Source: Heteronotia binoei (taxonomy: Eukaryota). From it: DNA of 64,000 bases. Under the pieces are notes generated by a model that saw nothing but the letters and a program-made list of their open reading frames with translations, did no database searches and was not told the origin of the DNA. Below, in pieces: positions 11,125 to 61,585 of the stretch. Made by a program: the position numbers and the translations under genes. Numbering within the stretch: the stretch's first letter is position 1; each line of letters opens with the position of its first letter. Location: the NCBI RefSeq assembly GCF_032191835.1, contig NC_083237.1, forward strand, positions 22,630,001-22,694,000, read 5' to 3'.

Positions 11125-11200
11125 CCATGGCACCAAATGTGTCTCTCAGGTCTTCCTTGTCAATGATGCCATCTCTGTTCTGGTCAATGACAGTGAAGGC
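11125..11200 (-). CDS. MYL11: MYL11 exon 3 (Ca/Mg-binding EF hand)
   Basis: [25 protein letters not shown](G); 76 nt; TAG acceptor and GTAAG donor. Confidence 0.97.
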
Positions 11201-12170: not shown

Positions 12171-12917
12171 TGGAAACAAACAAACAAGTGATTGCAAAAT
12201 TAAAGGAAGAGGTTATATTAATGGCTTCTACCTATCTGAAAAGCCCTAATATCAAGAGGGAGAAAAATTAACATGGGCAAATGAGGAACAGCCAAGATAC
12301 AGTAGGGATGGATTGTAATTAAACAGTTTCAATATCTTTAGGTAGCAGTGTAGGGGGACAGAATCTAAAAACTAATTTTTTAGCAGGGTTGCCAGATCTT
12401 TCTATAGAACTTACAAACATCTCCTGATTTCTGCCCTTCATGAAACAAAGCATCATGGGATTGGAGAGGGGGTTACCTGACCAACTTGATTCTCTTTTGG
12501 CCTCTCCCCCCCACCCCCCCTTCTCTGCAGCTGTGCCCTAGAGACACCTGTCACCCGATATCCCTCTTTGCGTCTGCCAGGAATGGAAACAATTTTCTTC
12601 TGTCTCCTATTAAACCCCAAGCCCCTCCCTTGGGAGACAGGTGGTACATTCCAAAGGAGCTGTTGATGAGATCTCCAGAGGCTGCCACTGTGGGGAGGGG
12701 GAAGGAGGGAGTCTCCGCTGCTGCCTTGCCTCACTCATTCCCCTTCTCTGCTTCACTCCACATGTGTCTCCTTCCTTCCTGCTACAAAGGAACTGCTTGA
12801 TAGCCACAATGTGCACACAGCCGGTCCTGTCCTTCAGGGAATGCACAAGTGGAGGATTTGCCAATGCTCTCTCTTCATTTGAAACCCACCCCCCTGTAAA
12901 TTACAAATACTGGGAAT

Positions 12918-13112
12918 CAGTGTTCATTCTAAGCTGAGTTAGCGTGAGCTAGTTCACAGATTTTTAGCCTCCAGCTCACACATTTTTGTTTTAGCTCAGG
13001 AAGGATGACTCCAGAGCACAATAATTTATGCAGTAGCTCCACAACTTTATTGCCAGTAGCTCACAAAGTAGAATTTTTGCTCACTAGACTCTGCAGCTTA
13101 GAGGGAACACTG
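12918..13112 (+). mobile_element. Complete hAT MITE (CAGTGTTCCCTCTAAG family)
   Basis: TIRs CAGTGTTCATTCTAAGCTG and CAGCTTAGAGGGAACACTG; perfect 8-bp TSD CTGGGAAT at 12910-12917 and 13113-13120. Confidence 0.92.
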
Positions 13113-13218
13113 CTGGGAATGGTGAGAGGCAGAAATTGCATTTCCCCAACAATCCCCCATTGTGGCTGGAGTGCCACAATGAGGCCTACTTCAGAAGCGC
13201 AATCCGGATCCTTTCCGG

Positions 13219-13414
13219 TTAGGGTTGCCAATTTCCAAGCGGAGGATGGAGATCTCCTGGAATTGCAACTGATCTCCAAGCGACAGAGAAATTAGTTCAC
13301 CTGGAGAAATGGCTGCTTTGAAAGGGGGCTGTATGGCACTCCCCAAACCTCGCCCTCCTCAGGCTCCACTGCTCAAATCTGGAGGTGTTTCCTAACCTAG
13401 AGCTGGCAATCCTA
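13219..13414 (+). mobile_element. MITE with TAGGGTTGCCA...TGGCAATCCTA termini
   Basis: Terminal inverted repeats present. Related copies at about 5985-6130, 9200-9410 and 17015-17225. Confidence 0.7.
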
Positions 13415-15765
13415 TTTCCAATCCATATGGTCAAAATTGAATGCTCAAAAACAACACTAACTGGAAAATCCTCACAGTGCCTTTGGGCAGATTTGGAGAG
13501 GACAGTGATTATTACTAGTAGAAATAATTATTGTTAATTACATGGTGTCATTAGTGTCCGTAGGCAAATGTTGGATCCGCACAGTGAGCAGCTTACAACT
13601 TATATATAGCAATTTTAAAATCAAGGGAGTACTTGCTTTGAGAATTTGTTTTTCTCAGCAACCCAAAGCTGTGCAATTCTAGAACCTTGTCCTCAAAAGA
13701 CACCTTGCAAGAGACACTGATCTCCATAAAGTAAGAAGTAACACCGAACCTTTGAAGGTACCGTATACTGAGTCAAGACTGTTGGTGCAACAAGCCTAAA
13801 CATTCTCTGCTGCAATTGGCAATGGCTCTCTAGACAGATTCTCTCCAAAAATGGAGGTCAGCAAAGCAAAAGGCAGGAACTAAAATCATACCCAAAGAGT
13901 GGTTAAGGAGATGCTAGAAGAAAAACTAAGGCTCTTCTTCCAGTATTCTGCTGGTGAGATGTGGCATATGTACCAAAGTTTTTCAAAAATGTTGACATCA
14001 AAAAGCAACCGAGCTGGAAGGAATTATAATTTAAATGGGGACTCTCCTCACTCCACTATTTAAATGTAGCATTTCCCCCTTTTCCTCCAGAATGAGACTT
14101 AAAGATTAAGGGTTTTTTTTATAGATTTTTCAAAGGTGGGCCCTGGCTCCGCTTTCAATGACTTGAAGCCCGTAGATTTCCGTGACCCCTCTTTCTCCAA
14201 GCCCGTCATCCAGAATATGTCTCCAAAGATCTCCTTGTAAGGAGCTGCCGCTTGTTCCGTCCAAGCACAGATGCTGCCTACTGTCTCAGTTATCCCTTGC
14301 CCAAAATAGATACTGCTGTGTCTCAAGGGTTCCGGAAAGGAACCTCCGTCATTCTTGGGGTGGGGGGTGTTGCGGGGTGGTAGCGACACCCACATAAGGG
14401 CAAGGAAATGGAGACTTAGAAGCTGAGATGTCTTCCTCACTGGTGTTCTCCATGAGGGCATTTTGCTATGAATTGGGATTTATTACTAAAGGGTTCTGAA
14501 ACAGGGTGTGTGCATGTGGTGGAGAGGATGGGAAGGGGAGAAATCTGTCTTACAAAATGGAGGAGCTACAGAAACATGCAAGACTAAGCGGCATCAACAA
14601 TATCAGTTGTTCTAAGCCCTTAAATCCTACACAACCTTAAAAACTTTGTCAGATTACAGTTGCTATGCATCTTTGTCCTTTTTATGACTTGGGAATGTTC
14701 CTTGTTTTTTTTTTGTTTTTTTTTTTAAATCTTGTCCTAGGAAGCTCCCTGCAACATATAACCTTTTGAAGTTGGTTGTGAAATAGAGACAGGCCCAAGC
14801 TGACTTGAGTGAGGACTCCTCAGATGTACTCCAACATTCTCAACTACAACATCACATAGGTTCCCGTCTACTACACAAGCACTGCTCTACATCTATTAAA
14901 GCATAAGATAGGACACTGAAGATCTACCTACATGTTACACTGTTTTCTCTGGGCCCCACCTAGGACCACATGATCAGATGTATGTTGCAAGATCATGCCA
15001 GGAACTTACTTCCCAAGAGTGTGAGCCCAATTAGGATTGCGATCATTGTGTATGAGGAAAAGAAGTTCAGCCTCCCCCCCGCACTGTTTCCCAACCTGAA
15101 ACAGCTCTAGGGGGCTATTATTTGCCATGTTTAGTGTTGGGGCACACCTAGATTTCCCGGTGTGAGTGTCTATGTGTGTGTGTGTGGGGGGGGGGATGTT
15201 GTCTATCAGTTTCAAGGCAATGATCTACATAACTGGGAAATTCTTCACATATTTCTTCTAGGATTTTGCGCTCTGTTAGCTGAATGTCTATGCCCATGTA
15301 ACTTAGTCTTCCCCCAAAACACTTAAATCTCTGTTTTTTGCCGTTAAAGGCACCCCAGTTTGTAAGCAGAGCAGAGCCAATATTTGCACTACACAGAGCT
15401 GAAAAAAATGAACAGTACCATAGAGTTACTCCAGTCTAAGGCCACTGAAATCAATGGACTTAGACTGGAGATGAATTGACTTAACAGTGCAGAGGATTGC
15501 ACCGTCAGACCAAGATGTTAAGTTTCTGCTGTTGCATATCTAAAATAACATCCCTCCTTTTTAAAGAGACTGTTAAGAAAGCTGTAGAAAGGACAGAAGG
15601 GACCGTAAATCATGGCACATTACAGGGGAGACCACCTTTGGATCTTCTTTCAGAATGTGAACTTTATAAAGGACTGGGAGTTCTAAGAATCCTCCTCTAG
15701 CTCTTAGTCCTGCTTCCAGTAAATGGCATCCATTCCCTCCCACCACTGCTGTCCTTGTTCCTTAC

Positions 15766-15861
15766 CTCTTTGAACTCCTGGATCTGTGTTTGGTCAAACA
15801 TGGAGAAAACATTGGAGCTTCCTCCTTCGGCTGCTGCCCTCCTCTTTGCCTTCTTGGGTGC
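15766..15861 (-). CDS. MYL11: MYL11 exon 2 (N-terminal MLCK phosphorylation region)
   Basis: [32 protein letters not shown]; 96 nt; CAG acceptor and GTAAGG donor. Confidence 0.97.
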
Positions 15862-15912
15862 CTGGAACAGGTTAAGGAGGCAATGGAAAATCAGACCAAT
15901 TCATGGCATAAA

Positions 15913-28419: not shown

Positions 28420-28793
28420 GGGGAGTGGCCAAACTGTGATTCGGGAGCTACATGTGGCTCTTCCACACATATTGTGTGGCTCTTAAAGTCCCCACTGCCC
28501 CACCGGCTAGCATTTATCTCTTTGAATCACTTCTCCAGGCCAGCTGGCAGCTTGGAGAATNNNNNNNNNNNNNNNNNNNNNNNNNNNNNNNNNNNNNNNN
28601 NNNNNNNNNNNNNNNNNNNNNNNNNNNNNNNNNNNNNNNNNNNNNNNNNNNNNNNNNNNNNNNNNNNNNNNNNNNNNNNNNNNNNNNNNNNNNNNNNNNN
28701 NNNNNNNNNNNNNNNNNNNNNNNNNNNNNTGGCTCTCAAACATCTGACATTTATTCTATGTAGCTCTTATGTTAAGCACGTTTGGCCACCCTA
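28420..28793. mobile_element. hAT-like MITE containing an assembly gap (N at 28561-28729)
   Basis: Termini GGGGAGTGGCCAAAC and GTTTGGCCACCCTA; same family as 15913-16192. Confidence 0.65.
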
Positions 28794-30021: not shown

Positions 30022-32799
30022 CAGGGGTGGCCGACAGTAGCTTTTAGAAATGCTTTGGGTTGAAATAGAGGGTCCAAAAGGAAATTTAACTATGGGAGTT
30101 TGTTATCGCCCACCAAATCAAAAGAGAGAGGATGATTATAATATGATGGAAGGCTTAAAGATAGCGGCTAAACGTTAAAAACTGTGTTGTAATAGGTGAT
30201 TTTAACTACCCGCGGATTGATTGGGTCAATATGTGTTCTGGTAGAGAGAAAGAGATTGAGTTTCTAGATGCTCTCAATGACTGTGCTATGGAGCAGATGG
30301 TCTCAGAACCTACCAGGGGTGGGGCGATCCTGGATTTGGTCCTAAGTAATGCCCAAGACTTGGTGAGAGATGTAAAAGTGATTGCGCCTCTTGGGAGCAG
30401 TGACCATAATGTTATTGATTTCACCGTTTGTATAAATAGGGAGTTGCCCAAAAAGACCGCCACAACCACGTTTACTTTAAAAAGGGTAGATACACTGAGA
30501 TGAGGAGGCATGTGAGGAGGAAACTGAAAGGAAAGGTAAATACGGTCAAAACCCTTGGGGAAGCTTGGACACTATTTAAAACTATAATCCTAGAAGCTCA
30601 GATAAAATACATACCACAAGTTAGGAAAGGCACAAACAGGCATAAGAAAAGGCCTGCGTGGTTAACAAACAAAGTAATGGAAGGTGTAAAAGGTAAAAAG
30701 GACTCCTTTAAGCGGTGGAAAACCAGTCCAAGTGAGATTAGTAAAAGGGAACACAGGCTGTGGCAAATCAAATGCAAGACTGTGATCAGGCAGGCAAAAA
30801 GGGATTATGAGGAGCATATTGCAAAAAACATAAAGACCAACAATAAAAATTTCTTCAAATATATTAGAAGTAGGAAACCAGCCAGGGAGGAAGTGGGGCC
30901 CTTGGATGACCATGGGGTTAAAGGATTACTGAAGGAGGATAGGGAAATGGCTGAGAAGCTGAATGAATTTTTTGCCTCCGTCTTCACTGTGGAAGACGAG
31001 AACTTTTTGCCCGCCCCTGAACCACTAATTTTGGAAGGGGTGTTGAAAGACCTGAGTCAGATTGAGGTGACAAAAGAGGAGGTCCTACAACTGATAGACA
31101 AATTAAAAACTAATAAGTCACCGGGTCCGGATGGCATACATCCGAGAGTTCTGAAAGAACTCAAAGATGAACTTGTGGATCTTTTGACAAAAATCTGTAA
31201 TCTTTCATTGAAATCTGTCTCCGTTCCTGAGGACTGGAAGGTAGCAAATGTCACCCCCATCTTTAAAAAGGGTTCCAGAGGAGATCCGGGAAATTACAGG
31301 CCAGTCAGTCTGACTTCAATACCGGGAAAGTTGGTAGAAACCATTATCAAAGACAGAATGAGTAGGCACATTGATGAACACGGGTTATTGAGGAAGACTC
31401 AGCATGGGAAGATCTTGCCTCACTAACCTGTTATATTTCTTTGAGGGGGTGAACAAACATGTGGACAAAGGAGACCCGATAGATGTTGTATACCTTGACT
31501 TCCAAAAAGCTTTTGATAAAGTTCTTCATCAAAGGCTCCTTAGAAAGCTTGAGAGTCATGGAGTAAAAGGACAGGTCCTCTTGTGGATCAAAAACTGGCT
31601 GAGTAATAGGAAGCAGAGAGTGAGTATAAATGGGCAGTCTTCACAGTGGAGGACAGTAAGCAGTGGGGTGCCGCAGGGCTCGGTACTGGGTCCCTTGCTC
31701 TTTAACTTATTCATAAATGATTTAGAGTTGGGAGTGAGCAGTGAAGTGGCCAAGTTTGCGGATGACACTAAATTGTTCAGGGTGGTGAGAACCAGAGAGG
31801 ATTGTGAGGAACTCCAAAGGGGTCTGTTGAGGCTGGGTGAATGGGCGTCAACGTGGCAGATGCGGTTCAATGTGGCCAAGTGCAAAGTAATGCACATTGG
31901 GGCCAAGAATCCCAGCTACAAATACAAGTTGATGGGGTGTGAACTGGCAGAGACTGACCAAGAGAGAGATCTTGGGGTCGTGGTAGATAACTCACTGAAA
32001 ATGTCAAGACAGTGTGCGTTTGCAATAAAAAAGGCCAACGCCATGCTGGGAATTATTAGGAAGGGAATTGAAAACAAATCAGCCAGTATCATAATGCCCC
32101 TGTATAAATCGATGGTGCGGTCTCATTTGGAGTACTGTGTGCAGTTCTGGTCGCCGCACCTCAAAAAGGATATTATAGCATTGGAGAAAGTCCAGAAAAG
32201 GGCAACTAGAATGATTAAAGGGCTGGAGCACTTTCCCTATGAAGAAAGGTTGAAACGCTTGGGGCTCTTTAGCTTGGAGAAACGTCGACTGCGGGGTGAC
32301 AAGATAGATGTTTACAAGATAATGCATGGGATGGAGAAAGTAGAGAAAGAAGTACTTTTCTCCCTTTCTCACAATACAAGAACTCGTGGGCAGTCGATGA
32401 AATTGCTGAGCAGAAAGGTTAAAACGGATAAAAGGAAGTACTTCTTCACCCAAAGAGTGATTAACATGTGGAATTCACTGCCACAGGAGGTGGTGGCGGC
32501 CACAAGTATAGCCACCTTCAAGAGGGGTTTAGATAAAACTATGGAGCACAGGTCCATCAGTGGCTATTAGCCACAGTGTGTGTGTATATATAATTTTTTT
32601 TTGCCACTGTGTGACACAGAGTGTTGGACTGGATGGGCCGTTGGCCTGATCCAACATGGCTTCTCTTATGTTCTTATGTAGCTCTCCAGATGTTTTTTTG
32701 CCTACAACTCCAATCAGCCCCAGCCATTGGCCATGCTGGCTGGGGCTGATGGGAGTTGTAGGCAGAAAACATCTGGAGATCTACCATTGGCCACCCCTG
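30022..32799. mobile_element. Hairpin hAT MITE (CAGGGGTGGCC...GGCCACCCCTG) interrupted by a CR1
   Basis: TIRs at 30022 and 32799; 8-bp TSD GGCTACAT/GACTACAT; palindromic body at 32684-32780. Confidence 0.85.
30043..32678 (+). mobile_element. CR1 LINE, 5'-truncated, ORF2 broken by frameshifts at about 30500 and 31405
   Basis: Endonuclease motif GDFNYP/SSDHN, RT motifs PQGSVLGP and FADD, TTCTTATG tail. 6-bp TSD GTAGCT at 30037-30042 and 32678-32683. Closely similar to 344-2801. Confidence 0.97.
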
Positions 32800-40072: not shown

Positions 40073-41359
40073 GGGAGTTTCCCTTCTTCCTCCTGATGAC
40101 TGTGCCTAGAGATCGGTATCCTAGGATTCTCTTGCTCTCTGCTTTCCAGAGAAAGGAGAGCCTTTCCAGAGACCCCTGGAGAAGGGCTCTGGAAGCGTCT
40201 AGATTAGAAATATTCACAGTGCAAATGTGTTTTTAAAAAGAACACACATGCCTGTGTTTTTACATTTGTTTCTCTGTCAAGACCAATTCCCATGGCTGAG
40301 TTAAAAAAAAATATTAGTCTGTTTGCAGCCAAATTTTCTTTCTCTCACACACACATATATACACCCACCGGTCAACTTGAAATCTCTTGGTAGAGAGCAG
40401 GCTCACTGTGCGCTCAGATGCCTGGTGCTGGTTTTGTAACACCTTGCATGCAGCAGCTGGCAGGCAAAGCTGACTTCCATCTCCAAAAGATTAACCTAGT
40501 TTGAAAAAAGGAGCTGCAACATTTACTGAGCAGTCAGGTTGCTTAATTGACTAAAAAGGTAACCTGGTTTAGGTTCCGCCCCCCCCCCAGACCTTGTTTG
40601 ACATACAACTCCCTAGGGAAAACGGGAGCAGCAGCAGATGCTGTCTCCCTCTCTTCCATTTTCTCCACACGGCCTCTGTGCCTAAGCATCCTCTAAAAAC
40701 AAAGGATGCTTTCATCAGTAGAACACTTCCTGCGCAAACACATGCATAGATTTCATTGGTTTCTTGAATGGTGACAGCTCTGTTTGAGAACTGGGAAGTG
40801 GAACCGCTGGTCAGGAATGAAGGTATATTGTTAATTAAACGAAAAACTTTTTCATATAAGCTGGGGGGGGGAGGGGAAGGTTGGTTGGCTGGCTGTTTGA
40901 TTCTAGCCCTCTAGGGCTCTATAACAGAAGACTCTGTGCCTCTAACAGCTTGCAGAGCAGGTAGGGATCAGGTGACACTTTCCCTCAGCATCAATGTATG
41001 TCCACTCTAGGAAAAGGTTCATCTCTGTGTTCCCCTTGCCTTTTTACAGGCTCCCTTGAACAGCTGCATAGAAGACACTGCCCTCCTGCCTCTCTGGGGC
41101 TCCTGCAGGGCTGTAGAGTTTTTGCCTCCTTCCCCATCTCATAACAGTTAGATCACCCTGCCTCCTGCAGAAGCTGTAGATGCTTACTGTGTGCGTGGAT
41201 GTGTACAGCGCATGCATGTTCTTTTGAACCTCTGGCTCCTCTTTTTCTCAGTCAAGGGCAGTGATAAGATAGAAAATGGAAGCAGGCGGGGGAACAGAAA
41301 GAGGGTGCCGTTTTCAGGGTCTCCAACTACTTCTTCACCCTAAAACATATCTTGTGCAG

Positions 41360-41549
41360 GAGGCAATCCAGCTGGACGGGGAGATCTTCTTTGCTCTTTT
41401 ACGGCGAGTGTCCCCCATTGCCTACCGCCACCTGAAGAGGTACAAGATCGACCCCATCTTGTATATGACCGAGTGGTTTATGTGCGTCTTCTCCCGGACC
41501 TTGCCCTGGTGCTCCGTATTGCGCGTTTGGGACATGTTCTTCTGCGAAG
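41360..41549 (+). CDS. TBC1D10B: TBC1D10B exon 7
   Basis: [63 protein letters not shown](G); 190 nt. Confidence 0.97.
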
Positions 41550-41720
41550 GTGAGACTCGGCCTTCTGGCCCCATAAAGCCTTGCACGTTTGGTCACTTGG
41601 GGTCCTTTCTTTCCCAGTTGACAGGGAAAGCGACCTCCCCAGAGACAAAACTATTCTCTTTTCTAGAAACGCACTTTGTCTTTTTCCCTACCTGGACTTC
41701 CGTTATTAAACAGCAGGAAG

Positions 41721-41901
41721 CAGGGACTTTTTTGTAGCAGGAACTCCTTTGCATATTACGCCACAATCCCTGATGTTGCCAATCCTTCAAGAGCTTACAG
41801 GGCTCTTAGTACAGGGCTTACTGTAAGCTCCAGGAGGACTGGCTACATCAGGGGTGTGTGGCCTAATATGCAAAGGAGTTCCTGCTACAGAAGAAGCCCT
41901 G
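41721..41901. mobile_element. Complete palindromic hAT MITE (long type)
   Basis: Long inverted arms; TSD GCAGGAAG/GAAGGAAG. Another copy at 43768-43935. Confidence 0.88.
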
Positions 41902-49689: not shown

Positions 49690-49938
49690 AAAAGGAGAGA
49701 AGAGACTGCCCTTCACTACCCAAAGGAGCCTCAGAGTGGCTTACAATCTCCTTTCCCTTCCCTCCCCCTAAGACACCCTGTGAGGTAGGTGGGGCTGAGA
49801 GAGCTCTGACAGAAACAGCTCTTGAAAGAACAGCTCTGACAGAGTTATGACTGACCCAAGGTCACTTGAGGAGTGGGGAATCAAAGTCAGTTCTCCCAAA
49901 TAAGAGTCCACACATTTAACCAGTACACCAAACTGGCT
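49690..49938 (-). mobile_element. tRNA-derived SINE, same family as 4076-4351
   Basis: - strand head AGCCAGTTTGGTGTACTGGTTAA; body similar to the other copies. Confidence 0.8.
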
Positions 49939-50163
49939 CTCAAAAGAACCTTAAAGTTGTCTTTTGGTAGAGGTCGTATAGCAGATATTTTCTCATGAAG
50001 GATTTGCATTGCCAAAAGCTTCCCCTCCTTCTGCAAGCACTCCCTGAGGTATCACTTTGTTAGGCCCAGAGATCTCCATAACTAGCATTCCTTCCTCATG
50101 CCTGGCAATTTTTTCCCCTGAGGATAAAGTTGCAGTGAATAATCCATCGCTTACTGTTTTTAA

Positions 50164-50169
50164 TTTATT
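50164..50169 (-). terminator. Probable poly(A) signal of the PHETA-like gene
   Basis: AATAAA on the - strand about 180 nt after the stop codon. Confidence 0.6.
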
Positions 50170-50345
50170 AAAATATTCTCTTTAAAAAAAAGTACCTAAG
50201 GTTTCTGTTTTACAGGTGCGGATCAAACAGGTGATTCAGGCAGTTATACGTAGCAGTATCATTCCCTTCCTCTGACTTCATATAGATTCCAATTCTCTAG
50301 ACTTGCTTATTGTGGTCAAGCATTTGGTATTGCTGTTTTTCCCCC

Positions 50346-50966
50346 CTACCCCAAGTCTATCAAATTGTTTTCTGTAGGTTGCTTCTTGGCAGCTTTCTTC
50401 TCCTTCCACATACACCTTAAGCTCACAATGTCCTCACCAAATTCCTGGTGGAGCCGTGAGAAATTTGTCTGTTTGGATCCCATTTCAGCCACCAGTTTTG
50501 GAAAGGGGAGCTTACAGTTTTTTGAGGCTCCTGGGGCTCCATCTGATTTGAGAGGCTGCTGGTTCTTCAGCATTTGAAACTGCCCTTCCAGCTCAGCAGC
50601 CAAGGCCCTGAGGTATTCGAACCTGGCGGTACTGAGTGCTCGCACCCAGCCCTCCAGTGTTTCTTGATTCTCAGCTGCCATCTGGTATGCCCGGCTACCA
50701 GGTAACCCACGGGGGTAAGAAATTTCAAAAGCATATGGTTCAGATGTGGATTCTCGTAGTTCCACGGTGCAGCCTTCCAAGATGATGAGTTTAGGAGGAT
50801 CCCGGTCTCCAGCTCGCTCCCGATAGAAGAGAAGATTACCCCAGAGCATGCACCAACACGGGTGGTAGGAGGAACTGCGACTGCTCTTTTTATACAGCAA
50901 CCCCTGCCGGTCTGGGGTGCGTTCCAGGCGGGAAGAGATCAAAGCACTGGAGATGTGGAGTTTCAT
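50346..50966 (-). CDS. PHETA/Sesquipedalian/IPIP27-family PH-domain endocytic adaptor, single coding exon, 206 aa; probably a third paralog, neither PHETA1 nor PHETA2
   Basis: MKL start; PH domain GLLYKK...W..L.GNLLFY...IILEGCTVEL...YAFEI...AAENQETLEGWVRALSTARFEYLR; coiled coil; F&H motif FSRLHQEFG. Kozak ACCACCATG, with a CAG acceptor 12 nt upstream of the ATG. Confidence 0.9.
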   Translation of the reverse strand: MKLHISSALISSRLERTPDRQGLLYKKSSRSSSYHPCWCMLWGNLLFYRERAGDRDPPKLIILEGCTVELRESTSEPYAFEISYPRGLPGSRAYQMAAENQETLEGWVRALSTARFEYLRALAAELEGQFQMLKNQQPLKSDGAPGASKNCKLPFPKLVAEMGSKQTNFSRLHQEFGEDIVSLRCMWKEKKAAKKQPTENNLIDLG

Positions 50967-51089
50967 GGTGGTCAGACCCTGGAAGTGTAGAGATGAGGAT
51001 GAGTGAAAAAAAGCATCTGAATGTAAGGAAACAATAGCAAGTTGGAAAGGTCATGAATAGGTGCATGAGACTGGTGAAAAAGTAAAAAG

Positions 51090-51262
51090 GTAAAGGTAGT
51101 CCCTGTGTAAGCATCGAGTCATTACCGAACCATGGGGTGATGTCACATCACAATGTTTTCTTGGCAGACTTTTTGTTATGGGGTGGTTTGACATTGCCTT
51201 CCCCAGTCACCTTACACTTTACCCCCAGCAAACTGGGTAGTCATTTTATCACCCTGGGAAGG
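51090..51262 (-). mobile_element. Sauria SINE 3' fragment in the PHETA-like intron
   Basis: AAAGGTAAAGGTAGTCCCTGTG...GGGGTGGTTTGACATTGCCTTCCCC. Confidence 0.8.
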
Positions 51263-51936
51263 ACAGAGAAAGGGATAAAAGAATGAAGGGATAGTAAGAG
51301 GGAAAGTGAAAACACAGAATAAGGAATAAAACCAATGCAGGAATTAAGGGAAGGAGATTCTGAAGGGGATTTAAAAAACCAAGGGAGCCACATTCTAAAC
51401 AGGAGAAATAAAAATTCATTTAAAGCACTTATTAGCTGCCTTTCTCCTTTGTGGATCTCAGGATGGCTTACAATATAAACAAAACATAAAAACACAACAA
51501 AACCAACGAGTCGCCGTTTTAAAACTCCAGTCAGGACTGCCTGTTTTGCTGTCAAGTCAGAGAGGGAAATGAAATACCAACTGAGGGAACAGCATCAAGT
51601 AAAGGAGGAGTAAAGTGCGAAATAGCCTCAAAAAGGGAGTGGACATACCAGGGCATGCAGGAATTCAGGCGAGGAGAGGATGGGTGACTAAACAAAAGGC
51701 ATGCTGAGGGAAGGCTGGAACAAAGGAAAGACGATTATACCCCCAGGGTTAAATTTTAAGAAGTGGGCGGCGGGAAATGAAAAGCCTAAGAAAAGGGAAA
51801 TGCCAACCGAAGGAGCAATGACTAATGGAAAACAGAAAAGCCAAGCTCTCTGCCCGGTTGGCAGGCCCTGGAGCTTCCTGGAGGGCGCAGCCACAGAGCA
51901 GGAGCCGGCCTTTCCACCCCACCTGGAGCTCCTCAC

Positions 51937-52075
51937 CTTGGCGCCAAATCATCCAGTCGCCCCTTTGAGACTAGAGTTTCTTGGGCCGGGCCGCTCAAGT
52001 TTCTCCTCCCTCGCCCCGCCAAGGGCAGTCGCGGTTTCCTAGGTGAGGTGAGGGGCGGGGCTTGCGCTCACCTGG
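51937..52075 (-). promoter_or_regulatory. Candidate non-coding first exon and GC-box promoter of the PHETA-like gene
   Basis: CpG-rich patch. - strand donors AAG|GTGAGG (exon end 51937) and CAG|GTGAGC (exon end 52072). GGGGCGGGGC at 52052-52061. Confidence 0.45.
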
Positions 52076-53064
52076 CTGGCTCCATCCAAGTCACTCGAGC
52101 CCACCTTCCAGCAGGAAGAGTTTCGGTGGGAGAAGAGACCCGCAGCCACTCCAACGGGCAGGTCTTGGCTTCCTGCACCTCTCCAAGAGCAAAGAGGCCA
52201 GCCAGCTGCAAAGAGGAACTAAGGAAGCCGCAGTGTGCTGAGGATGCTAACCACAAGCTTAAAAAGTTATTTCTGGTTCAGTGGTCCGAAAAGGGATTCG
52301 TTTTAAGGGAGAGTGTGGCTGTGATCACACACTCTAACTAAATAATGGCCTTTCAGTGCCCTTTTCAACTGGATTTTACTGTGTGAACTGGCAAAATGCA
52401 ATTGGAAAGTGGGTTGAAAGTGCATTATTTAGTGTGTGTGGCTGCAGCCTAAATTGATCAAAGGGAACTACTGAGAAAATGTAGGGGTGGGGTTTCCCCT
52501 GGGGTGATGGTGGTGGTTTTGGATTAAGTTCATTTAAAATATTTCTAAGTTACTGTGATTCCTTATAAAGTGTCTGTTTTTTCCTGAGCTTGCTTCCCCT
52601 CCGTACTGATAGGTCATATATTGATATTTGAATGGATATTCTCTGACATAATACAGGCCTTTCCATAGCACATCCAGAATCAGAGCTCCTGGAGGACCTG
52701 GTAGTTTCCTGACAGACAGATCATGCATCACTACCTGTTGAATTTTAAACTGCCACTACAGCGCTACGTTTATGAGCCAAGTAAAAGATGGGAGATTTCT
52801 AGGCTGGGCCAGCAGTTCATAAACTGCCCAGCACCTGAAGAGGGAATACAAAGTCCCAAGAAGAGGAGAATGGATCTGGACTGGCAGGCATAGTATTCAC
52901 CTGCCTCCTGGCAAAACACTCAAGTTGATCCTCCGTGAACATGTTGTAGCGACTGCATTTCTATTGCTGGCCCATGCTAGCCTGATTTTCAAAAGAGGGA
53001 GAGGCTGTTGTGTTCTGGTGATAGTTCCCCATGCTGGTTTTAAATGGTGATCAAAGAAGTCCCT

Positions 53065-53194
53065 TTTTAAAAAATAACAGTTTATTAGTTTTAAATAATG
53101 AAACAGTACAATTATAAATAATACAATTATAAATAAAACATGAATAGGCTGATATTGTCTAAATGTCTGCCTATACACACCCACACCCACACAT

Positions 53195-53231
<37 letters not shown>

Positions 53232-53830
53232 TATAAACATATAACATGTCCTTCGAAGGAAGGTATTATAATAAATAAACAGTGCTGACATTCTACCATA
53301 GGTGTAAATCATTAACAATTTTAGGGATTTCTTGTTGAGCAGTTAGATATTCCAGTACAGGAAACCATATAGTATTAACAATGGAATGTTTCACAGCCAT
53401 CAAGTGAATTAAGATTGTCAGTCAATTTTGCCATCATATAAAACTCCCAAATTTTGTTATGCCACTGAGTAGGGGAAGGGGGTGATGTGCTTTTCCAATT
53501 CCTAGCAATGCACGTTTTTGCTGCAGACAATAATAATATGACTCTGTCAATAGTTGTAGAAGTATATTTATGAGAGACCCAACCTTGTAAGAAAAGATAT
53601 TCTGGGATTGCCAAAATATCAACTCTTGAAATTGAATTAATGTGAGTAATAACTGAGGACCAGAATTGTTTAACACTAGGACACTCTAGCCAACAATGTA
53701 AATAATCTTCAACCTGTCCACACTTTTTCCAGCACATAGGTGAGGAAGAACATTTCCACTCCACTTAAAGAAGTCCTTTTTAATGCCAGCGTTGGCTTAG
53801 GAACAAAAAACCCCTTGATTTTGACTCCCT
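53065..53830 (-). mobile_element. L1/Tx1-clade LINE, 3' fragment (ORF2 C-terminal zinc knuckle)
   Basis: CWKKCGQVEDYLHCWLECPSVKQFW...LLSAAKTCIARNWK...W; A-rich tail and (AC)/(AT) repeats at about 53175-53235. Confidence 0.8.
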
Positions 53831-54229
53831 TTAAAGGCTAGCGGATTTAACATACAATCTCAAAGACACTTTCCTGGGAGTAAATCAGGGATTTAACATG
53901 GGATGTACTTCTTAGTAGAAAGCCTTAGATCGCTATTTTATTGTGACAGGCTGTCATGGGATCCAGTCCACGAAAACGTCTGCCACGATCAATGCGAGAG
54001 TCTTGGCAGCTTTTACTGCAACCGAGTAACGGGGAGACCCTTCTGCGTGTTCCTCATCTACAACAGCAGCAGGCGGGAGACCACACCAGTGAGATCAAGT
54101 TTGTTTGTTTTTTTAAGGATAGGACATTAGTATATATATTTTAAAAACCCATGGAACTCCTACACAATTGTATGAGCCAATTAATTTTTAAATATTTTAA
54201 TTTTTTAGCGGTGAAGGTTCAATCCCTGG

Positions 54230-54520
54230 ACAGAGGAAAAAGCGGAAGGCGCGCTGTGCCTTTAAAATTTGCCCGTACTTCCTTCTGAATAAAGCCATCG
54301 GGTGCCCGAAGTAACGTCATTTCCTCTACGGAGAAATGCCCCTGCTCGCTTTCCGTCGTATCCGGTTTTGAATGCTGTAGACCCCGGATGTTGATGCCTT
54401 CGCGGTGGCGCTTCAGGGGCTGGGGTAGCTGCAGGAGTCTCAGCGTGACGATTTAGGTAGGGGTGGGCTTCTTTTCTACCGCCCGGGGGTGTGTATGTGC
54501 GAAGGTATTTGCAAAATACA
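54230..54520. promoter_or_regulatory. CD2BP2: CpG island, probable CD2BP2 promoter and non-coding exon 1
   Basis: Dense CpG. ETS-like GCGGAAG at 54242 and CCGGATGT at 54384; CRE-like ACGTCA at 54314; candidate donor TAG|GTAGGG at about 54457. Confidence 0.65.
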
Positions 54521-54866
54521 ACTGCTTCTTGTGCATGGCTTCTTAGGCGTGATGGAGAGGCCATTTGGAGGGGAGAAAATGGGGACTCTCCGACTGCCTT
54601 GAAGCCGCTGAGCTGTGCCCTCAGACTAGTTCCCGCCTTGGACTCACCTATGAGAGAGGCTGCAGCCTTGGGGTGCTTTCTAGGAGGAGGAAAGGGTTTG
54701 ATAGCGATTGGTGGGTGTGCGTAGAATTGATTTGCATATGCAAATAAGACGGCTTGATGTACAAGAGTTTTGCGGGTGAAGGAAAGCTGGGGAATTTGCC
54801 TGGATTTTGATAAGGAGGAAGTGATAACAGTGGGCTGCTATTCTCTCCCGAAGTTGATTTATGTTA

Positions 54867-56360
54867 GGGGAGGAGATGTGGCTCAGTGAAAGAGCCTCTG
54901 CTTTGCGTGCAAAAGGTCCCAGGTTCTATCCCTGGCATCTCCCAAGTTAAAAAGTTATATAATAATAGGTCCAGGTGGTAGGTGATATGAAAGACTTCTG
55001 TCTGAGATCCTGGAGAACTGCTGCCAGTCTGAGTAGACAATCCTGATCTCTGTCCCTGGGAAGAAACTGGAGCAGATTTTAAAGGGATCAGTCTGCAAAC
55101 ATCTAAAGGACAACTTGGTGATCCGGAGAAGTCAGCATGGATTTGTCCCATACAGCTCCTGCCAGACCAACCTCATTTTCTTCTTTGATCAAGTGACAAG
55201 CTTACTGGATTGGGGGAATGCTGTTGATGTTGTTTACCTGAATTTCAGTAACAGGGTTCCCCATGATGTTCTGATGGGTAAACTAGAGGACTGTGGACTG
55301 GACTCTGGGATAGGTGAATAGGGAACTGGTTGGAGAACAACACATAAAGAGTAGTTGTCAATGGCACTTCATCTGAATGGAGGGAGGAGACCAGTGTGGT
55401 GTGCCTCAGAGCTTGGTTCTGGGCCCAGTACTATTCAATATTTTTATTAATGATCTGGATGACAGTGTGGAGGAGCTACTCATTAAATTTGCAGATTAAA
55501 CCAAATTGGGAGGAACAGCGAACACACCAGAAGATAGAGATAGCGAGATTTGAGCACACTGGAAAAGTGGGCAGATGTGAAGAAGATGCAATTTAACAAG
55601 GATAAGTGCTGAGTTCTAGATCTGGGTAACAAAATGAGCAACACACATAACTGGATGGGAGATACACTTCTGGGTAGCAGCGTGTGTGAACAAAATATTG
55701 GGGTATGGGTGAGCGATAAGTTAAATATGAGCAGCCGGTGTGATGCAGCAACAAAAAAGGCTAATGCAGTCATGGGATGTATCAATAGAGGCATAACATT
55801 CAAATGTCATAGTTCTGCTGTACACTGCATTGGTCAGGCCACACCTGAAGTATTGTGTGTAGTTCTGGAGGCCTCAGTTCAAAAGGACAGAATGGAGCAG
55901 GTGCAGAGGAAAGCAACAAGGATTATCAGGGGCCTGGAGACCAAGCCCTAGGAGGAAAAGCTATGGGGAATGTTCATTCTGGAGAAGAGGAGGTTGAGGG
56001 GGGCTATGATTGTTCTCTTGAAGTATTTGAAGGGCTGTCACTTAGAGGAGAGCATGGAGCTGTTCCTGTTGGAAATAGAGGAGAGGACTCACAGTAATGA
56101 GTTTAAAGTAAGGGTAGGAAGGTACTGTCTAAATATTAGAAAAAAAACTTTACAGTAAGAGCAGTTTAGCATTGGAACAGGCTGCCTAGGGAGGTGGGTA
56201 GCCTTTTTAAAAAAAAGTGGCTGGGCAAACACTTGTCAGGGATGCTCTAGGCTGATCCTGTATTGAGCAGGGGGTTGGACTAGATGGCCTGTATGGCCCC
56301 TTCCAACTTTGTGATTCTATTATTCTAAGGGTCTGACTCAGTATAAGGCAGCTTCATGTG
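54867..56360 (+). mobile_element. tRNA-derived SINE with a CR1-like tail, split by an old CR1 insertion
   Basis: Head GGAGATGTGGCTCAGTG...GGTTCTATCCCTGGCATCTCC runs to GAGTAGACAATCCTGA at about 55046 and resumes as GGTCTGACTCAGTATAAGGCAGCTTC at about 56330. Confidence 0.7.
55047..56327 (+). mobile_element. Older, degenerate CR1 LINE (RT through 3' end)
   Basis: SQHGF...SCQTNLIFFFD.VTSL.D.GNAVDVVYLNFS, then RLRG.MI..LKYLKG; tail GTGATTCTATTATTCTA. Confidence 0.9.
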
Positions 56361-57850
56361 TGTTGTCTTAGCAGTCCAATCCTTTACTTTCAATTCTTCC
56401 TGGATTTTGCCACACAAAATAAAACCCCAAATAATGTGAAAATCCTTCAAGGAGAGCAGAATTGCACACACAAAGGGGGTGAGGTGAACTTGCATAATTT
56501 TCAGCAAGACGTTTGGAGGATGTTCGTTCAAAAAATTTAGAACAAAACATCAAGAAAAGGCAATACGTGTGTCTTTTGACTGGCTATTATCTTGGTGTGG
56601 CTGTTTTATTTTAGATTATTGTGAAGAGTGCAAGTCTGGGGAGAAGGTGGGAGAAGAAGAGGTGTATCTGTGCTAGAGTGGGAGCAGTGCTTAGTCTCCA
56701 TAGTAACTGATGGGTTTTCTTGCTAGCAACTCGTTACCCCTTCTCAGATCTGTCCTAAGTTTTAAAAGGGGACTCCATGCCCTAATGTCAGAGGAGAGGC
56801 TCATTAACCCCTACTAGCCCTATTCAGTTGTTGGGGTAGTGGTGGAGGGAATTGGTGGGGATGCCTATGGCCCTCATATGCTGCTTGTATGCTTCTTAGA
56901 AATATCCAGTTAGCTACTGTGGAAAACAGGATGCTGGACTAGGTGGACATTTGGTCTGATCCAGCAGTGATCTTATCATCTTATGCCCTTTTCTACATTC
57001 AGGGGTTTCAGTTCCTTATTGGATGTGTGACAGGCAGAAGTTCAGCAAGAGATAACTAACACTGATGGGGTTTATGTAACTGATTAATTTCTACCTGCGA
57101 AGCAGCTGTCAAAAAGTGCAACAGCCTGATCATTCTTACATTTTGTCATTTCTGTTGGGTAGTGGTTCAATTATTTGTTGGTTTGGTAAAATAATCTTTA
57201 AAGATAATTTGCAATGCCAAAGATTGAAACATACAAAATACAGTAAAGCCCCATCTGCTACCCTCCCAAATGCCTGCAACTTCAACCCCACTAATGGCCG
57301 TCGCAAGTAAGATGGCCTTGAAGCACCTCCCTCCTAATTCACCTCCTCAGGGGTCCCCTTCCACAAGGTGAGACCCACTGTAGAGAAGGAACCGGCCTCA
57401 GTAGCCACTGAGTGGGCCAACTTCAATGCAGGATCAACTAGAACATGGCAACTATTTGCCATAGGTGGTGCGCAGTCATTAAGCTGATTTAGACTTGTTT
57501 GGTTCCATCTTGGGTAGAACAGAATTTTTTTTTAAGTAATCGGTAATCAGTGGAGTTGTGTTGGACTTCTGGTATACAAGAGGGTTAAGTGATGTTCATT
57601 CAGCTGTCCTGTTTATCACTGTGGGCTGTAAAGATGGAGTCAGCAACTGTGTGTTTACAAACTTTCCCTGGACATGTGCAGAGTGGAGATAAGGGCATTA
57701 TCAGTTGCAGAACCAGCCTTCTGCCGAAGCTCGCAGACAGTCAAAAGTTGACTCGATAGCCGGCTTTGGAGTGTTGTGCATTGTGGGGATGACTCTGTAG
57801 GTTGTCTTTCCATCCACCTGTTAATCTGCATTGCTTCTCTCAGGACCAGA

Positions 57851-57925
57851 ATGTCCAAACGGAAGGTGACCTTTGAGGATCAAGGCAATGAAGATGAAGA
57901 GGAAATGAGTTTGTCAAAGAAGAAG
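57851..57925 (+). CDS. CD2BP2: CD2 antigen cytoplasmic tail-binding protein 2 (U5-52K), first coding exon
   Basis: MSKRKVTFEDQGNEDEEEMSLSKKK; acceptor ends at 57843; GTGAG donor. Confidence 0.95.
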
Positions 57926-57946
57926 GTGAGAGATGAGTGTCAGAAG

Positions 57947-57949
<3 letters not shown>

Positions 57950-57979
<30 letters not shown>
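57950..57979 (+). repeat. (TG)15 microsatellite
   Basis: Directly visible, 24 nt downstream of the donor. Confidence 0.99.
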
Positions 57980-57981
<2 letters not shown>

Positions 57982-58670
57982 AAAGAGGGAATCACCTCTT
58001 TCGTTCCTTCCTGCCCTGAACTTGGTCTGCAGAAGACAAATTGGCAGGGAACAAGTAATACCATTTTTGTTACACAAAAAACTGGAAGATTGTTTGAGTA
58101 CATCATTGAAGGAATTAATTCTTCTGTATGTTCTAGCCTTCTACTTAAGATGATTCTTACAAGAGGGGAGGTTGGTGGTGACTACAGACAGGGCTTTTTT
58201 CGTGGTGGCACCTTGCCTGTGAAATGCATTTTTTTTTTTAGGCTTGCCCGCCACCTACCCTGCTCTCTTGTAGAGGCCAGGGCAAAATTTTTCACCCAGG
58301 TTTTTATTTAAGAGGGTTGAGGTTTTTAAAGTGGTTGTACAGTTTTTTTTTCTGAGGACCGTTTTATGAGAATTGTTCTGAACTGTTGCGTGTTTTATGT
58401 TGTCTGTATACTCTGGCTGGGTTTTAATGGCTTATTTTTTAAAACAATTTTTATGCTGTTTTATTGTGTGTTACTTTGTAAGCCACCTCAAGCAGGTTTT
58501 CTGGAGAGGCAGCATATATCTTTTTAACTAAAAAAAAAAAAGACTCAGGGCAGTTTACAATCAGAGTAACTGCTAGTTTAAAGAAGCCAGAAACTACTGA
58601 TGTTGACAGAAAGGGAGAGAGATTTCAGTCCCGGAATAAAGAGTTTCTTCACCTTTGTCTCCCATATTAG

Positions 58671-58815
58671 CTGGTGGAACCTGCAGTTGGAGGGCCAGGC
58701 AGCCGCTTTAAGGGCAAGCATTCATTGGACAGTGATGAGGAGGATGATGATGATGAGGGTGACGATGAAGGGCGAGGCAGTAAATATGATATTCTTGCAT
58801 CAGACGATGTGGAGG
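58671..58815 (+). CDS. CD2BP2: CD2BP2 coding exon 2
   Basis: LVEPAVGGPGSRFKGKHSLDSDEEDDDDEGDDEGRGSKYDILASDDVE(G); 145 nt. Confidence 0.96.
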
Positions 58816-59251
58816 GTAAGTGTGGTCTTGGAACTGAGGGCTAGAATTGCAAGTTTTTGGTGTCAGAATTCAGCATTCTGATATCCTTATCTTTTTTTTT
58901 TAATTCTCATTTAAACCATCAAATTTCTGACCCTCATGGCTGTAAAAACAAGAGTGGGGGTTGTGTTGGGGATGCCAGGGGTGTAGATATGGTTGTTCGA
59001 GGGGTGAATGGGCAATTTAAGAGCTGTTATAATACTTAGAAAACAACTGTGGGCAAAGCTTTTCCCCAAATACTTGCAAAGATGTTCACTGTATTTTTTT
59101 AATGTAAGGAGATGCCTGGGTGTGATATTTGCGGTGTTAAAGGATTCATTGCCATGCATTCCTCCTGGTTCAGTGATAAAAATGCTAAACTTGCGGAAGT
59201 GTCGAGTTACAGGAGAGTGGTAAAAACTTTTCATCCCACTTGCCCTTGCAG

Positions 59252-59409
59252 GACAGGAGTCTGCCACCATTGACTATGAAGACGGCGTCCGGATCACCCC
59301 ATTCAACTTGCAGGAGGAGATGGAAGAAGGCCATTTTGACTCGGAGGGGAACTACTTCTTGAAGAAGGAGGCCATGATTCGGGACAACTGGTTGGACAAC
59401 ATAGACTGG
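59252..59409 (+). CDS. CD2BP2: CD2BP2 coding exon 3
   Basis: QESATIDYEDGVRITPFNLQEEMEEGHFDSEGNYFLKKEAMIRDNWLDNIDW; 158 nt. Confidence 0.97.
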
Positions 59410-60654
59410 GTAAGACCTCCCTTCTAGCCTGTGTGGAAAACTGTTGGAACGAACGATCTCTGCTACCCCACGGCCCTTGAGATTCCCCAGGTACATCACA
59501 TAGAGATGATGGTATAAATTAGGCTATGTGGATTCCCGGATTGTACCATGTAAGTGCAGGAACTTGTATTTGATACAGGATGACAGCATCTGGGCATGGA
59601 ACGGGGGTCACTGGGGGTGTGTGAGAGAAGGTATTTGTGAATTTTCTGTGTTGTGCAGGGATTGGACTAGATGACCCTGGAGGTTCCTTCCAACTCTATG
59701 ATTCTCTTACTCAAACTCAAAAAAGCCTTTATTAGCATATATCAGATTATAAACAAGCAAATAAACTGCTACAAAAATAACAAAAACAGTCATATGCAGC
59801 TATACGTTGGACTATCAATCCTTGATTACCAGACTTAAGAATAAAGCAACCTTTTCAGTTATTTCAGATGACAAATCATTCAGAAGATGGCAAACCTTTA
59901 CAGCACCTGAGCAGCCTGTCATATTGAACAGAACTGGATCTAGAAACCTCATATAGTATCATATAGGGGTCAATAAAGAAGAATATGGGACGAGTCAACT
60001 TGTTTTAAATTACATATACATAGTCTTAATGAAAGTGGGATTTTTTTATATCTACCATTGGTAACTGCTGATGGGATTGTATTGCATCTGGCAAGGGTAA
60101 ATGCTGTATGCAATTTTGGAACATGGAGAGTTGATAAATAAGAAGACAAATGACCAATAGTTGGGAGCAAGATTTATTCGCAACACTCATTTGTTTTTCT
60201 AATTCAATATCTAAAATTCTGTGTTTAATTACATAATACGTGTTTGTGAGAGGAAACATATAAAAAGAATCCATAGACAAACCTAAGGTGATTATTTTAC
60301 TCTCTATGCAGGAAATCCATTTGGACAATAATTCAGACAGCATTTTATATAAATAACTCCCACGGTTAGCAGAATAGTGCACATGTAGCCAATATTTGAT
60401 TTATATAAGCCATGCTCTAGTTTCTAACATATTGAGGCCTGTTTCTAGACAAAGAGTGGCATGGTTCTCTGTCCAGTGTTTGCATGGTATCATTGCGTGC
60501 ATGCACCCCACAGATTGTGGGAAGAGTGTCTGAGGGAACCACTACAAAGGAGTGTAGCTGCATCATTAGGTCCAGATCTACATTCTGTGAGTTTTTAAAA
60601 ACATCCTGTCCCCCCCCCCCTACTTATAATTCATCGCTCTCTTTTCCCCACCAG

Positions 60655-61162
60655 GTCAAGATAAAGGAACAGCCTCCCGGTCGGAAGAAGGCACCCCTGG
60701 ATTCCGCAGAGGATGACAAGGAAGAGGACGACGACAGCCTCGAGGTTGGCCAGACGCCTTTGGACAAGAGGGAGCTGCTCGAAGGGATGGTGGATTTAGT
60801 GCAGCCCGGCGAGACGGTGGCCAGAGCTATCCAAAGGCTTGGAGACAAGGGTGGGACCAAGAGCACTGGGCGCCAGCGGAGGCCCTGGAGCCGCCTGAAG
60901 GCAGAGGAGGCGGAGCCAGTGGAGGAGGGTGATCCCCAGAAGCTGGAGTCCCCTGAGCGGAAAGAGCAGCTGGAGCGCTTGTCGGGGCTGGCAGACCAGA
61001 TGGTGGCGCGAGGGGTCTACGAGATCTACCAGGAGACTCGGGAGAAGCTGGCTTTAAGGCTCCGGGCGTTGGATCATCCTCCTGCAGCGCCTTCCGAACC
61101 CGAATTAGACATGTTTGCTGAGGATATCGATGAAGCAAAGCTGGGGGAGAAGACACCAGTGG
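60655..61162 (+). CDS. CD2BP2: CD2BP2 coding exon 4
   Basis: VKIKEQPPGR...ETVARAIQRLG...LERLSGLADQMVARGVYEIYQETREKLALRL...LDMFAEDI; 508 nt. Confidence 0.95.
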
Positions 61163-61585
61163 GTGAGAGGACGGAGCGGGAAGGCTGATGGCTTGCCTGG
61201 TTAGGGGGAGGGGGAGGAACGGGGCAGCCTTAGAGCTGAAACACATGATCGGGAGAACCGCACAGACAAACGCCTTGCTGAGCCTGTACCACTTCAGACT
61301 ACTGGTGGGGGAGTCAAGTTGGAATGCTTGTTGCAGCATCAAGAAGAGAAGAATGTTGGGGAGAAGGGTTCCGGTGTGGCGTTCTCCCCAACATGCTGTG
61401 TCTCTCTGTGCAAAGAGTCTTCAGGAAGACACTCAGACCTCTGGCTACACCACCAACCCCCCCCCCCCGCCACGTTGTTTGAAGTAGTTCAGCCCGGCAA
61501 TTGTGATTCTCCCGATGGAATGTTCCAGCTCTTTGTCGTTGGGTTTTCAGTGCAGTCGGCAACCTGACATGATAATGTTCTTCAG

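Follow-up and report, generated by a model that had tools for sequence, protein, structure and literature searches.

The two described PHETA adaptors, PHETA1 (Sesquipedalian-1, IPIP27A, FAM109A) and PHETA2 (Sesquipedalian-2, IPIP27B, FAM109B), connect the Lowe-syndrome phosphatase OCRL to endocytic recycling. Here we describe a third gene of this type in the gecko Heteronotia binoei. It lies in a 64,000-nucleotide stretch of DNA, hereafter the window (positions 22,630,001 to 22,694,000 of contig NC_083237.1, assembly GCF_032191835.1), where an open reading frame (ORF) on the minus strand at 50346-50966 encodes what we call the PHETA3-type protein. It is highly probable that this is the gecko ortholog of an ancient third vertebrate PHETA gene, and that it is functional and likely a small endocytic adaptor. 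Gene structure, expression, orthology, synteny, constraint and motif conservation were observed or computed here. An original prediction, made from the sequence alone, had nominated the locus and had named a gene tree, the synteny of the TBC1D10B-CD2BP2 interval, the ratio of non-synonymous to synonymous substitution rates (dN/dS) and RNA evidence of splicing as its checks, all of which were run.

Among known proteins, PHETA1 is the best structural match to the window protein, as both possess a PH domain, a coiled-coil helix, a C-terminal F&H motif and a single coding exon. However, the window protein lacks the PPPxPPRR motif of PHETA1, begins with MKLH rather than MKLNERS, and ends in LIDLG, which is absent from PHETA1. 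Identity is roughly 43% and extends over the PH domain only, a figure that holds for both other gecko copies; the two proteins fall in separate clades, and PHETA1 is found on a different gecko chromosome (C11) with SH2B3/ATXN2-type neighbors. PHETA2 shares this architecture, F&H motif included, but it too belongs to a separate clade, has no C-terminal clathrin-box-like motif, and is located on C8. OCRL1 binding by IPIP27A and IPIP27B depends on three elements of the F&H motif (F, H and E-I), and IPIP27 dimerizes, with IPIP27A/B heterodimers also forming (PMC3046058). The closest likeness to the LIDLG tail is found in OCRL1 itself, whose functional clathrin sites are LIDIA and LIDLE (PMC3313792). 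While the pentapeptides are nearly identical (the turtle counterpart is LIDLE in emydids), the OCRL1 sites lie in a loop of the phosphatase, whereas LIDLG stands at the extreme C-terminus of the adaptor, in a predicted disordered tail where clathrin binding is putative.

The genes that NCBI lists as ‘sesquipedalian-1-like’ LOC entries in squamates, turtles, frogs and mammals are orthologs of the window gene, sharing its clade and its position and encoding 190-215 amino acids (aa). They carry no curated name, and the literature searched held neither a publication on them nor a paper naming a third PHETA paralog (matches to the term Ses3 were unrelated). Automatic pipelines already predict the gene in more than 100 species. 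The gene adds an unnamed new member to a known family and does not represent a new kind of thing.

The gecko genome contains three PHETA-like loci: the window gene on C15, a PHETA1-type gene on C11 whose protein starts MKLNERSLAFYATCD and clusters with sesquipedalian-1, and a PHETA2-type gene on C8 whose protein clusters with sesquipedalian-2. Relatives were collected animal-wide by one exhaustive profile-free search and two indexed searches, with names assigned through cluster look-ups. In a maximum-likelihood tree of 75 proteins (LG+C20+F+G4, rooted on an arthropod outgroup; zebrafish Pheta2 is not among the sequences), PHETA1 and PHETA2 form one clade with support of 100/98, and its sister is a third clade (99/88) that has a lamprey fragment at its base and a gnathostome part supported at 97/89. 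The window gene belongs to an amniote-plus-frog subclade (98/93) together with turtles, monotremes, marsupials and placentals. The fishes of the third clade are horn shark, catshark, bichir, paddlefish/sturgeon, several teleosts, coelacanth and lungfish, with gar assigned by its N- and C-terminal motifs only; its tetrapods are caecilian, salamander, frogs, turtles, squamates, monotremes, marsupials and placentals.

Approximately unbiased (AU) tests were then applied to the alternatives. Forcing the sauropsid genes to cluster with amniote PHETA1 costs 79 log-likelihood units (p = 2.4e-5), and forcing them to cluster with PHETA2 costs 64 (p = 2.9e-4). Given these rejections and the separate clade, the window gene does not nest inside PHETA1 or PHETA2. 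Its lack of PPPxPPRR and its location on C15 rather than C11 likewise separate it from PHETA1, and the PHETA2-type gene of the gecko sits on C8.

The ORF at 50346-50966 is a single uninterrupted frame of 206 codons plus stop with an ATG start, and no other long ORF is found there. Its translation, a match to the Gekko japonicus ‘sesquipedalian-1-like’ protein and its dN/dS mark it as a complete coding sequence (CDS). The start codon lies in the context gACCACCATGa (ACCACCATG), and a polypyrimidine tract and AG terminate 12 nt 5′ of it. Transcript evidence came from RNA contigs of two runs with the same species label, in which 56% and 39% of the words sampled from the window were present, and from RNA reads placed on 49900-55899. 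A splice joint at 50977/8 to 51936/7 is carried by one 536-nt RNA contig (run X1; 264 nt on one side of the joint, 272 nt on the other) as well as by four independent raw reads with four different starts (run X17). On the plus strand the skipped segment reads CT..AC. This joint sets the start of exon 2 at 50978, leaving 12 nt of 5′ untranslated region (UTR), ggtctgaccacc, in front of the ATG (50967-50978, minus strand), and it defines a 958-bp GT..AG intron within the 5′ UTR (50979-51936, minus strand; donor CAAG/GTGAGG, acceptor CTTCCAG/GG, with the slash at the splice site).

Exon 1 is non-coding and spans at least 51937-52207 on the minus strand, as given by the contig piece at 51936-52207; it has 62% G+C and is collinear with the Gekko and Paroedura loci. 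Exon 2 contains the entire CDS. In the spliced mRNA an in-frame TGA precedes the ATG by 27 nt and there is no in-frame upstream ATG; therefore, the 206-aa ORF is complete. The 3′ UTR (50164-50345, minus strand) extends to an AATAAA at 50164-50169, 176 nt past the stop, and RNA depth in run X17 persists over 50100-50345. The original prediction had described the uninterrupted 206-codon frame, a perfect Kozak sequence, an acceptor 12 nt upstream and an AATAAA about 180 nt downstream, and all of these were borne out. It had also argued that a single coding exon does not indicate a retrocopy, and this view agrees with the spliced intron, with the conserved position of the gene, and with the single coding exons of the PHETA1-type and PHETA2-type genes of the gecko.

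The order of genes in the window is QPRT (last exon, +), MYL11 (−), TBC1D10B (+), the PHETA3-type gene (50.2-52.2 kb, −) and CD2BP2 (+). The CD2BP2-TBC1D10B-MYL11 block corresponds to 16p11.2 in human. TBC1D10B, which lies tail-to-tail with the PHETA3-type gene, runs from its first to its last recognizable coding exon over 22962-44801 (+) and was identified by a RabGAP-TBC Pfam match in the exon at 41276-41737. The MYL11 (MYLPF) exons at 8850-15864 (−) share about 80% aa identity by tblastx with a 172-aa EF-hand gene beside the third-clade gene of the milkfish Chanos. The placement beside TBC1D10B and MYL11 that the original prediction had proposed is thus upheld. Outside this species, the order GYF(-)/PH(+)/TBC(-) is found in Gekko japonicus, Paroedura picta, an emydid turtle, cattle chromosome 25 and platypus, and in Xenopus laevis a TBC gene follows the third-clade PH gene with its orientation conserved; the position between TBC1D10B and CD2BP2 is held from frogs to mammals. 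The full 20-kb locus is collinear in the window, Gekko and Paroedura. In Chanos, the MYL11 ortholog is 3 kb beyond the third-clade gene, and in the horn shark (Heterodontus) a 161-aa EF-hand gene, a putative MYL11, lies 3.4 kb away; this was the one neighbor obtained for the coelacanth (Latimeria) and the two shark proteins. The gar gene has no called neighbor within 10 kb.

We also located the SH2B and ATXN2 paralogs by Pfam-family searches of the gecko genome. C15 carries MYL11 at 22.64 Mb, TBC1D10B at 22.65-22.675 Mb, the window gene at 22.68 Mb, an ATXN2-family gene (ATXN2L) at 29.79 Mb and an SH2B-family gene at 29.80 Mb. On C11, a MYL paralog is found at 79.73 Mb, PHETA1 at 80.09 Mb, an SH2B-family gene at 80.18 Mb, an ATXN2-family gene at 80.34 Mb and the closest TBC1D10B paralog at 55.2 Mb. 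The PHETA1-type gene is 90 kb from its SH2B neighbor, and no SH2 signatures were found in the four 10-kb pieces scanned around it. This arrangement agrees with the human order, which is MYL2-CUX2-PHETA1-SH2B3-ATXN2 on 12q and ATXN2L-SH2B1 on 16p (PMC12898128). Because four families are doubled in parallel and the duplication predates the split between sharks and bony vertebrates, the pattern fits the prediction of a whole-genome duplication, and the status of the window gene as an ohnolog from the early vertebrate genome duplications is well supported. A third SH2B gene (28.29 Mb) and a MYL paralog (28.92 Mb) on C18 look like a third member of the paralogon, one without a PHETA gene; this MYL paralog is 92% identical to the MYL11 exon. 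The neighbor argument that had been drawn from PHETA2 and TBC1D10A did not survive in this genome, as the closest TBC1D10B paralog is on the chromosome of PHETA1 (C11) and not on that of PHETA2 (C8).

The PHETA architecture that had been read from the ORF, namely a PH domain with IILEGCTVEL, a coiled coil and an F&H motif, was found in the protein. The PH domain occupies residues 20-113 (50628-50909, minus strand) and was recognized by Pfam (PF00169, E 2.3e-14), AlphaFold2 and Foldseek. In an AlphaFold2 model built from a 41-sequence alignment (mean predicted local distance difference test score, pLDDT, 70.8), this domain has seven strands and a helix at 101-112, with a pLDDT of about 90 across most of its length. 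Beyond the PH fold, the model has two helices (117-135 and 169-193) with a disordered linker between them (140-166), and the tail is disordered too. The predicted helix at 117-135 (50562-50618, minus strand), directly C-terminal of the PH domain, aligns to LVVRELEKQLEE of PHETA1/2 and is the likely counterpart of the coiled-coil/dimerization segment of IPIP27A/B. The F&H motif, assigned by alignment and lying in the predicted helix 169-193, spans residues 169-181 (F-S-R-L-H-Q-E-F-G-E-D-I-V; 50424-50462, minus strand) and reads F169-x3-H173 followed by F-G-E-D-I, with D179-I180 as its acidic-Ile pair. Among 41 third-clade proteins, F169, L172 and H173 are invariant and G177 and L202 nearly so. 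The best full-length fold matches among reviewed proteins were Sesquipedalian-1 and -2 (Foldseek); a PDB sequence search gave nothing closer than generic PH domains such as GRP1/cytohesin, and a search of the ESM Atlas returned only generic ‘Sesquipedalian’ clusters.

Both ends of the protein carry signatures of the third clade. The N-terminus in this clade is MKLH or MKIH in place of MKLNERS, and the C-terminus follows the pattern [DN]LIDL[GSE], with LIDFG, LLDFG (monotremes) and LMEFG (marsupials) as variants; the window protein starts with MKLH and ends in NNLIDLG. Its clathrin-box-like LIDLG (residues 202-206; 50349-50363, minus strand) stands out in the clade-wide alignment, as LIDL[GSE]/LIDFG/LLDFG is kept from sharks to squamates, monotremes and marsupials, and is absent from PHETA1/2, placentals and frogs. 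Placental proteins have an unrelated C-terminus in place of the LIDL tail, and the frog proteins are truncated to 163-172 aa. A C-terminal LI[DE]L is also present in Sesquipedalian proteins of an isopod, a millipede, a mite and a hemichordate (invertebrate C-termini read LIDLH, LIEL, LIEFES or LIDL), and the hemichordate protein (Ptychodera flava) combines it with PPPxPPR. Judging from these alignments, the ancestor probably carried both motifs, which the paralogs then split between each other. Since the LI[DE]L end occurs in invertebrates, the third clade would have retained an ancestral clathrin link that PHETA1/2 lost, and would itself have given up the proline motif.

From its sequence, we infer that the gecko protein binds OCRL/INPP5B and clathrin and that it dimerizes. 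In such an adaptor the PH domain would be the N-terminal module, the short coiled coil would mediate dimerization, the F&H helix would dock on the 5-phosphatases OCRL and INPP5B at their ASH-RhoGAP-like domain, and the LIDLG tail would engage the clathrin terminal domain. The protein would act at clathrin-coated structures rather than via PACSIN2.

The original prediction had cast the gene as a third ohnolog that mammals lost, at a locus where mammals have no such gene. Its first part stands, as the tree, the AU tests and the paralogon all indicate an ancient third paralog, but mammals as a group did not lose it: cattle (chromosome 25) and platypus keep an intact ortholog of 193-206 aa in an identical GYF(-)/PH(+)/TBC(-) setting. 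A search with the bovine protein returned intact ‘sesquipedalian-1-like’ proteins of 190-215 aa in monotremes, marsupials and many placental orders. Namely, they are present in both monotremes, in four marsupials, and among placentals in ruminants, hippopotamus, hyaena, lion, pinnipeds, canids, moles, a shrew, beaver, squirrels, marmots, kangaroo rat, tree shrew and armadillo. Disrupted models, truncated or out of frame within parts of the PH domain, come from bonobo, a colobine, a lemur, fin whale, another whale and a pipistrelle bat, and most of them have no Pfam PH match. No intact murid or hominid protein was returned by the bovine-protein search. Loss therefore appears, on these gene models, to be lineage-specific, with primates among the lineages affected, and it is owing to this loss in the primate lineage that the human-centered literature would know only two PHETA genes. 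Protein searches found no member in birds or crocodilians; those genomes were not searched directly, and absence from archosaurs is not established.

Several observations weigh against a functional, ancient third PHETA gene that likely serves as an endocytic adaptor, a reading that we nonetheless hold with high confidence. The textbook clathrin box has an acidic fifth residue, which LIDLG lacks, and in geckos the E of the ‘EI’ pair of the F&H motif is replaced by D. Amniote members are shortened to 190-210 aa, as against 250-283 aa in fishes, their branches are long, and their function may have drifted. The tree nests sharks among tetrapods, which is surely an artefact; its internal topology is partly unreliable, and the deep split is the sole trustworthy part. 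Expression is low and was detected in only one of two deep RNA runs. C8, which carries PHETA2, has none of the four paralogon families tested, which limits how far the paralogon bears on the history of PHETA1 versus PHETA2 in the two rounds of vertebrate genome duplication. Finally, a change from RRWF to PCWC in the squamate PH domain suggests that its lipid binding may differ.

This last change counts toward the possibility that the gene is functional but does not encode an OCRL/INPP5B adaptor in squamates, acting, for example, as a dominant-negative dimer partner of PHETA1/2 or through a new PH ligand. In strand beta-2 of the PH domain (window 50850-50870, codons 33-39), PCWC is common to all squamate orthologs; the turtle sequence is RRWC, and [KR]RWF is found in mammals, fishes and PHETA1/2. 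Basic residues in beta-2 usually serve phosphoinositide binding in PH domains. The squamate change removes them, although AlphaFold2 still folds the segment at a pLDDT of about 90. The linker has changed as well: PPPxPPRR, the PACSIN2 ligand of PHETA1, is absent from the window protein and from the third clade in our alignment, and at its position fishes, coelacanth and salamander carry KRSPKLW, while amniotes have lost this KRSPKLW/Pro-rich segment along with most of the linker. A dominant-negative partner would also have a precedent of sorts in the heterodimers of IPIP27A/B (PMC3046058). In contrast, geckos share the F&H core that is invariant throughout the clade, and both the coiled-coil helix and the C-terminal LIDLG are retained, so that we regard a non-adaptor role as unlikely.

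We also considered whether the gene might be a relic, still transcribed but without function, that is undergoing in sauropsids the decay seen in primates. In run X17, raw-read depth is roughly 2-7 across the ORF and 3′ UTR and drops to about zero in those parts of the intron that are free of repeats; run X18, one of the two deep runs, has no reads over the ORF and 3′ UTR. Expression is real and low, and probably tissue-dependent. Such low depth would suit a relic, as would the long branches, the linker lost in amniotes, and the pseudogenization in primates, whales and a bat, which indicates that the gene is dispensable in some lineages. However, dN/dS calculated by the Nei-Gojobori method for three geckos with 1000 bootstrap resamples (deeper pairs are saturated) is 0.30 for the window versus Gekko (95% bootstrap interval 0.16-0.56), 0.23 for the window versus Paroedura (0.14-0.36) and 0.24 for Gekko versus Paroedura (0.15-0.37). 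These values lie well away from 1, which 0 of 1000 resamples attained in the three pairs, and the PH domain is the most constrained region in both Paroedura comparisons (dN/dS 0.14-0.17). The CDS is also more conserved than its flanks, with nucleotide identities of 91% and 83% in the gecko comparisons against 71-80% and 68-74% for flanking intron and intergenic DNA. The protein is 87% identical to those of Gekko japonicus and G. kuhli, its best matches, and RNA reads differ from the window CDS at six sites, of which four are synonymous and two non-synonymous. Moreover, the ORF is intact in all squamates and turtles returned by the protein search, and conservation extends to the F&H residues and to the motif at the C-terminus. 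A relic is therefore very improbable, and we conclude that the window gene is functional, spliced, expressed and under purifying selection.

A last alternative is that PHETA1 or PHETA2 was recently duplicated or retrocopied in squamates or sauropsids and that the copy inserted next to TBC1D10B. The single coding exon and the mere 43% identity to both gecko copies could in principle reflect such a fast-evolving copy. However, grouping with amniote PHETA1 or PHETA2 is rejected by the AU tests, orthologs occupy the equivalent position in frog, turtle, monotreme and cow, the 5′ UTR intron is spliced, and the PHETA1 and PHETA2 genes of the gecko also have single coding exons, so that this origin is scarcely credible.

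Turning to the rest of the window, CD2BP2 occupies 54300-61188 (+), with a non-coding exon 1 that ends at 54457 (its start is approximate), a start-codon exon at about 57776 and exons to at least 61188. A loose RNA end at 54457 continues into ATGTCCAAACGGAAGGTGACC, the start of the CD2BP2 ORF at 57776. Exon 1 of CD2BP2 and exon 1 of the PHETA3-type gene are divergent and about 2 kb apart, with a bidirectional region between them. An ORF at 6569-7000 (+), just upstream of MYL11, is the last exon of QPRT; its C-terminal part corresponds to the final portion of the quinolinate phosphoribosyltransferase C-terminal domain (Pfam QRPTase_C, E 1.4e-11). Two closely similar copies of a retrotransposon that lacks long terminal repeats lie on the plus strand at 353-2514 and 30231-32570, with reverse-transcriptase ORFs (Pfam RVT_1). 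The second copy, which interrupts an intron of TBC1D10B, retains long open frames (308 and 388 aa) and seems to be young; at about 28540-28730, likewise within a TBC1D10B intron, the sequence is a run of N (masked or gap). In four short stretches (49900-50099, 51100-51299, 52300-52499 and 54900-55099), read depth is very high and loose ends are numerous in every RNA run. This is the behavior of abundant interspersed repeats, similar to short interspersed nuclear elements, and two of the stretches flank exon 2 of the PHETA3-type gene.

The third clade also has implications for zebrafish. Only two zebrafish homologs have been described (Ates et al., 2020; PMC7272357), one of which, Pheta1, shows synteny with sh2b3. 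The other, Pheta2 (zgc 153733, chromosome 3), has the F&H motif but not PPPxPPRR, has diverged further from human PHETA1/2, and lies at a locus with no synteny to either human PHETA locus (PMC7272357). Because each teleost that we sampled has one PHETA1-type gene and one third-clade gene, and because the third-clade gene of the ostariophysan Chanos lies beside mylpf, zebrafish pheta2 is probably a third-clade gene and not an ortholog of human PHETA2. Teleost members of the clade are about 265-275 aa long, keep KRSPKLW and have an intron within the CDS, whereas the gecko CDS is intronless and shorter. The published guide RNA targets translate to ELNERS for pheta1 and, on one strand, to LHDSQR for pheta2, which would be compatible with a protein beginning MKLH; these readings are ambiguous and were not relied on.

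On balance, we favor a scenario in which vertebrates ancestrally had three PHETA adaptors, of which the third alone kept the clathrin-box-like tail, corresponds to zebrafish pheta2, was lost in primates and probably in murids, and has gone unnamed in the literature. If this is true, work in human and mouse has missed a third gene, and the phenotypes of zebrafish pheta2 are not a model of human PHETA2. Compared with humans, livestock and non-primate models would have one extra adaptor, and the ‘sesquipedalian-1-like’ LOC genes merit a name of their own in genome annotation. A third member that has a clathrin-box-like tail instead of a PACSIN2 ligand, and that is present in most vertebrates yet broken in primates, would call for both the evolution of the family and its animal models to be reread.

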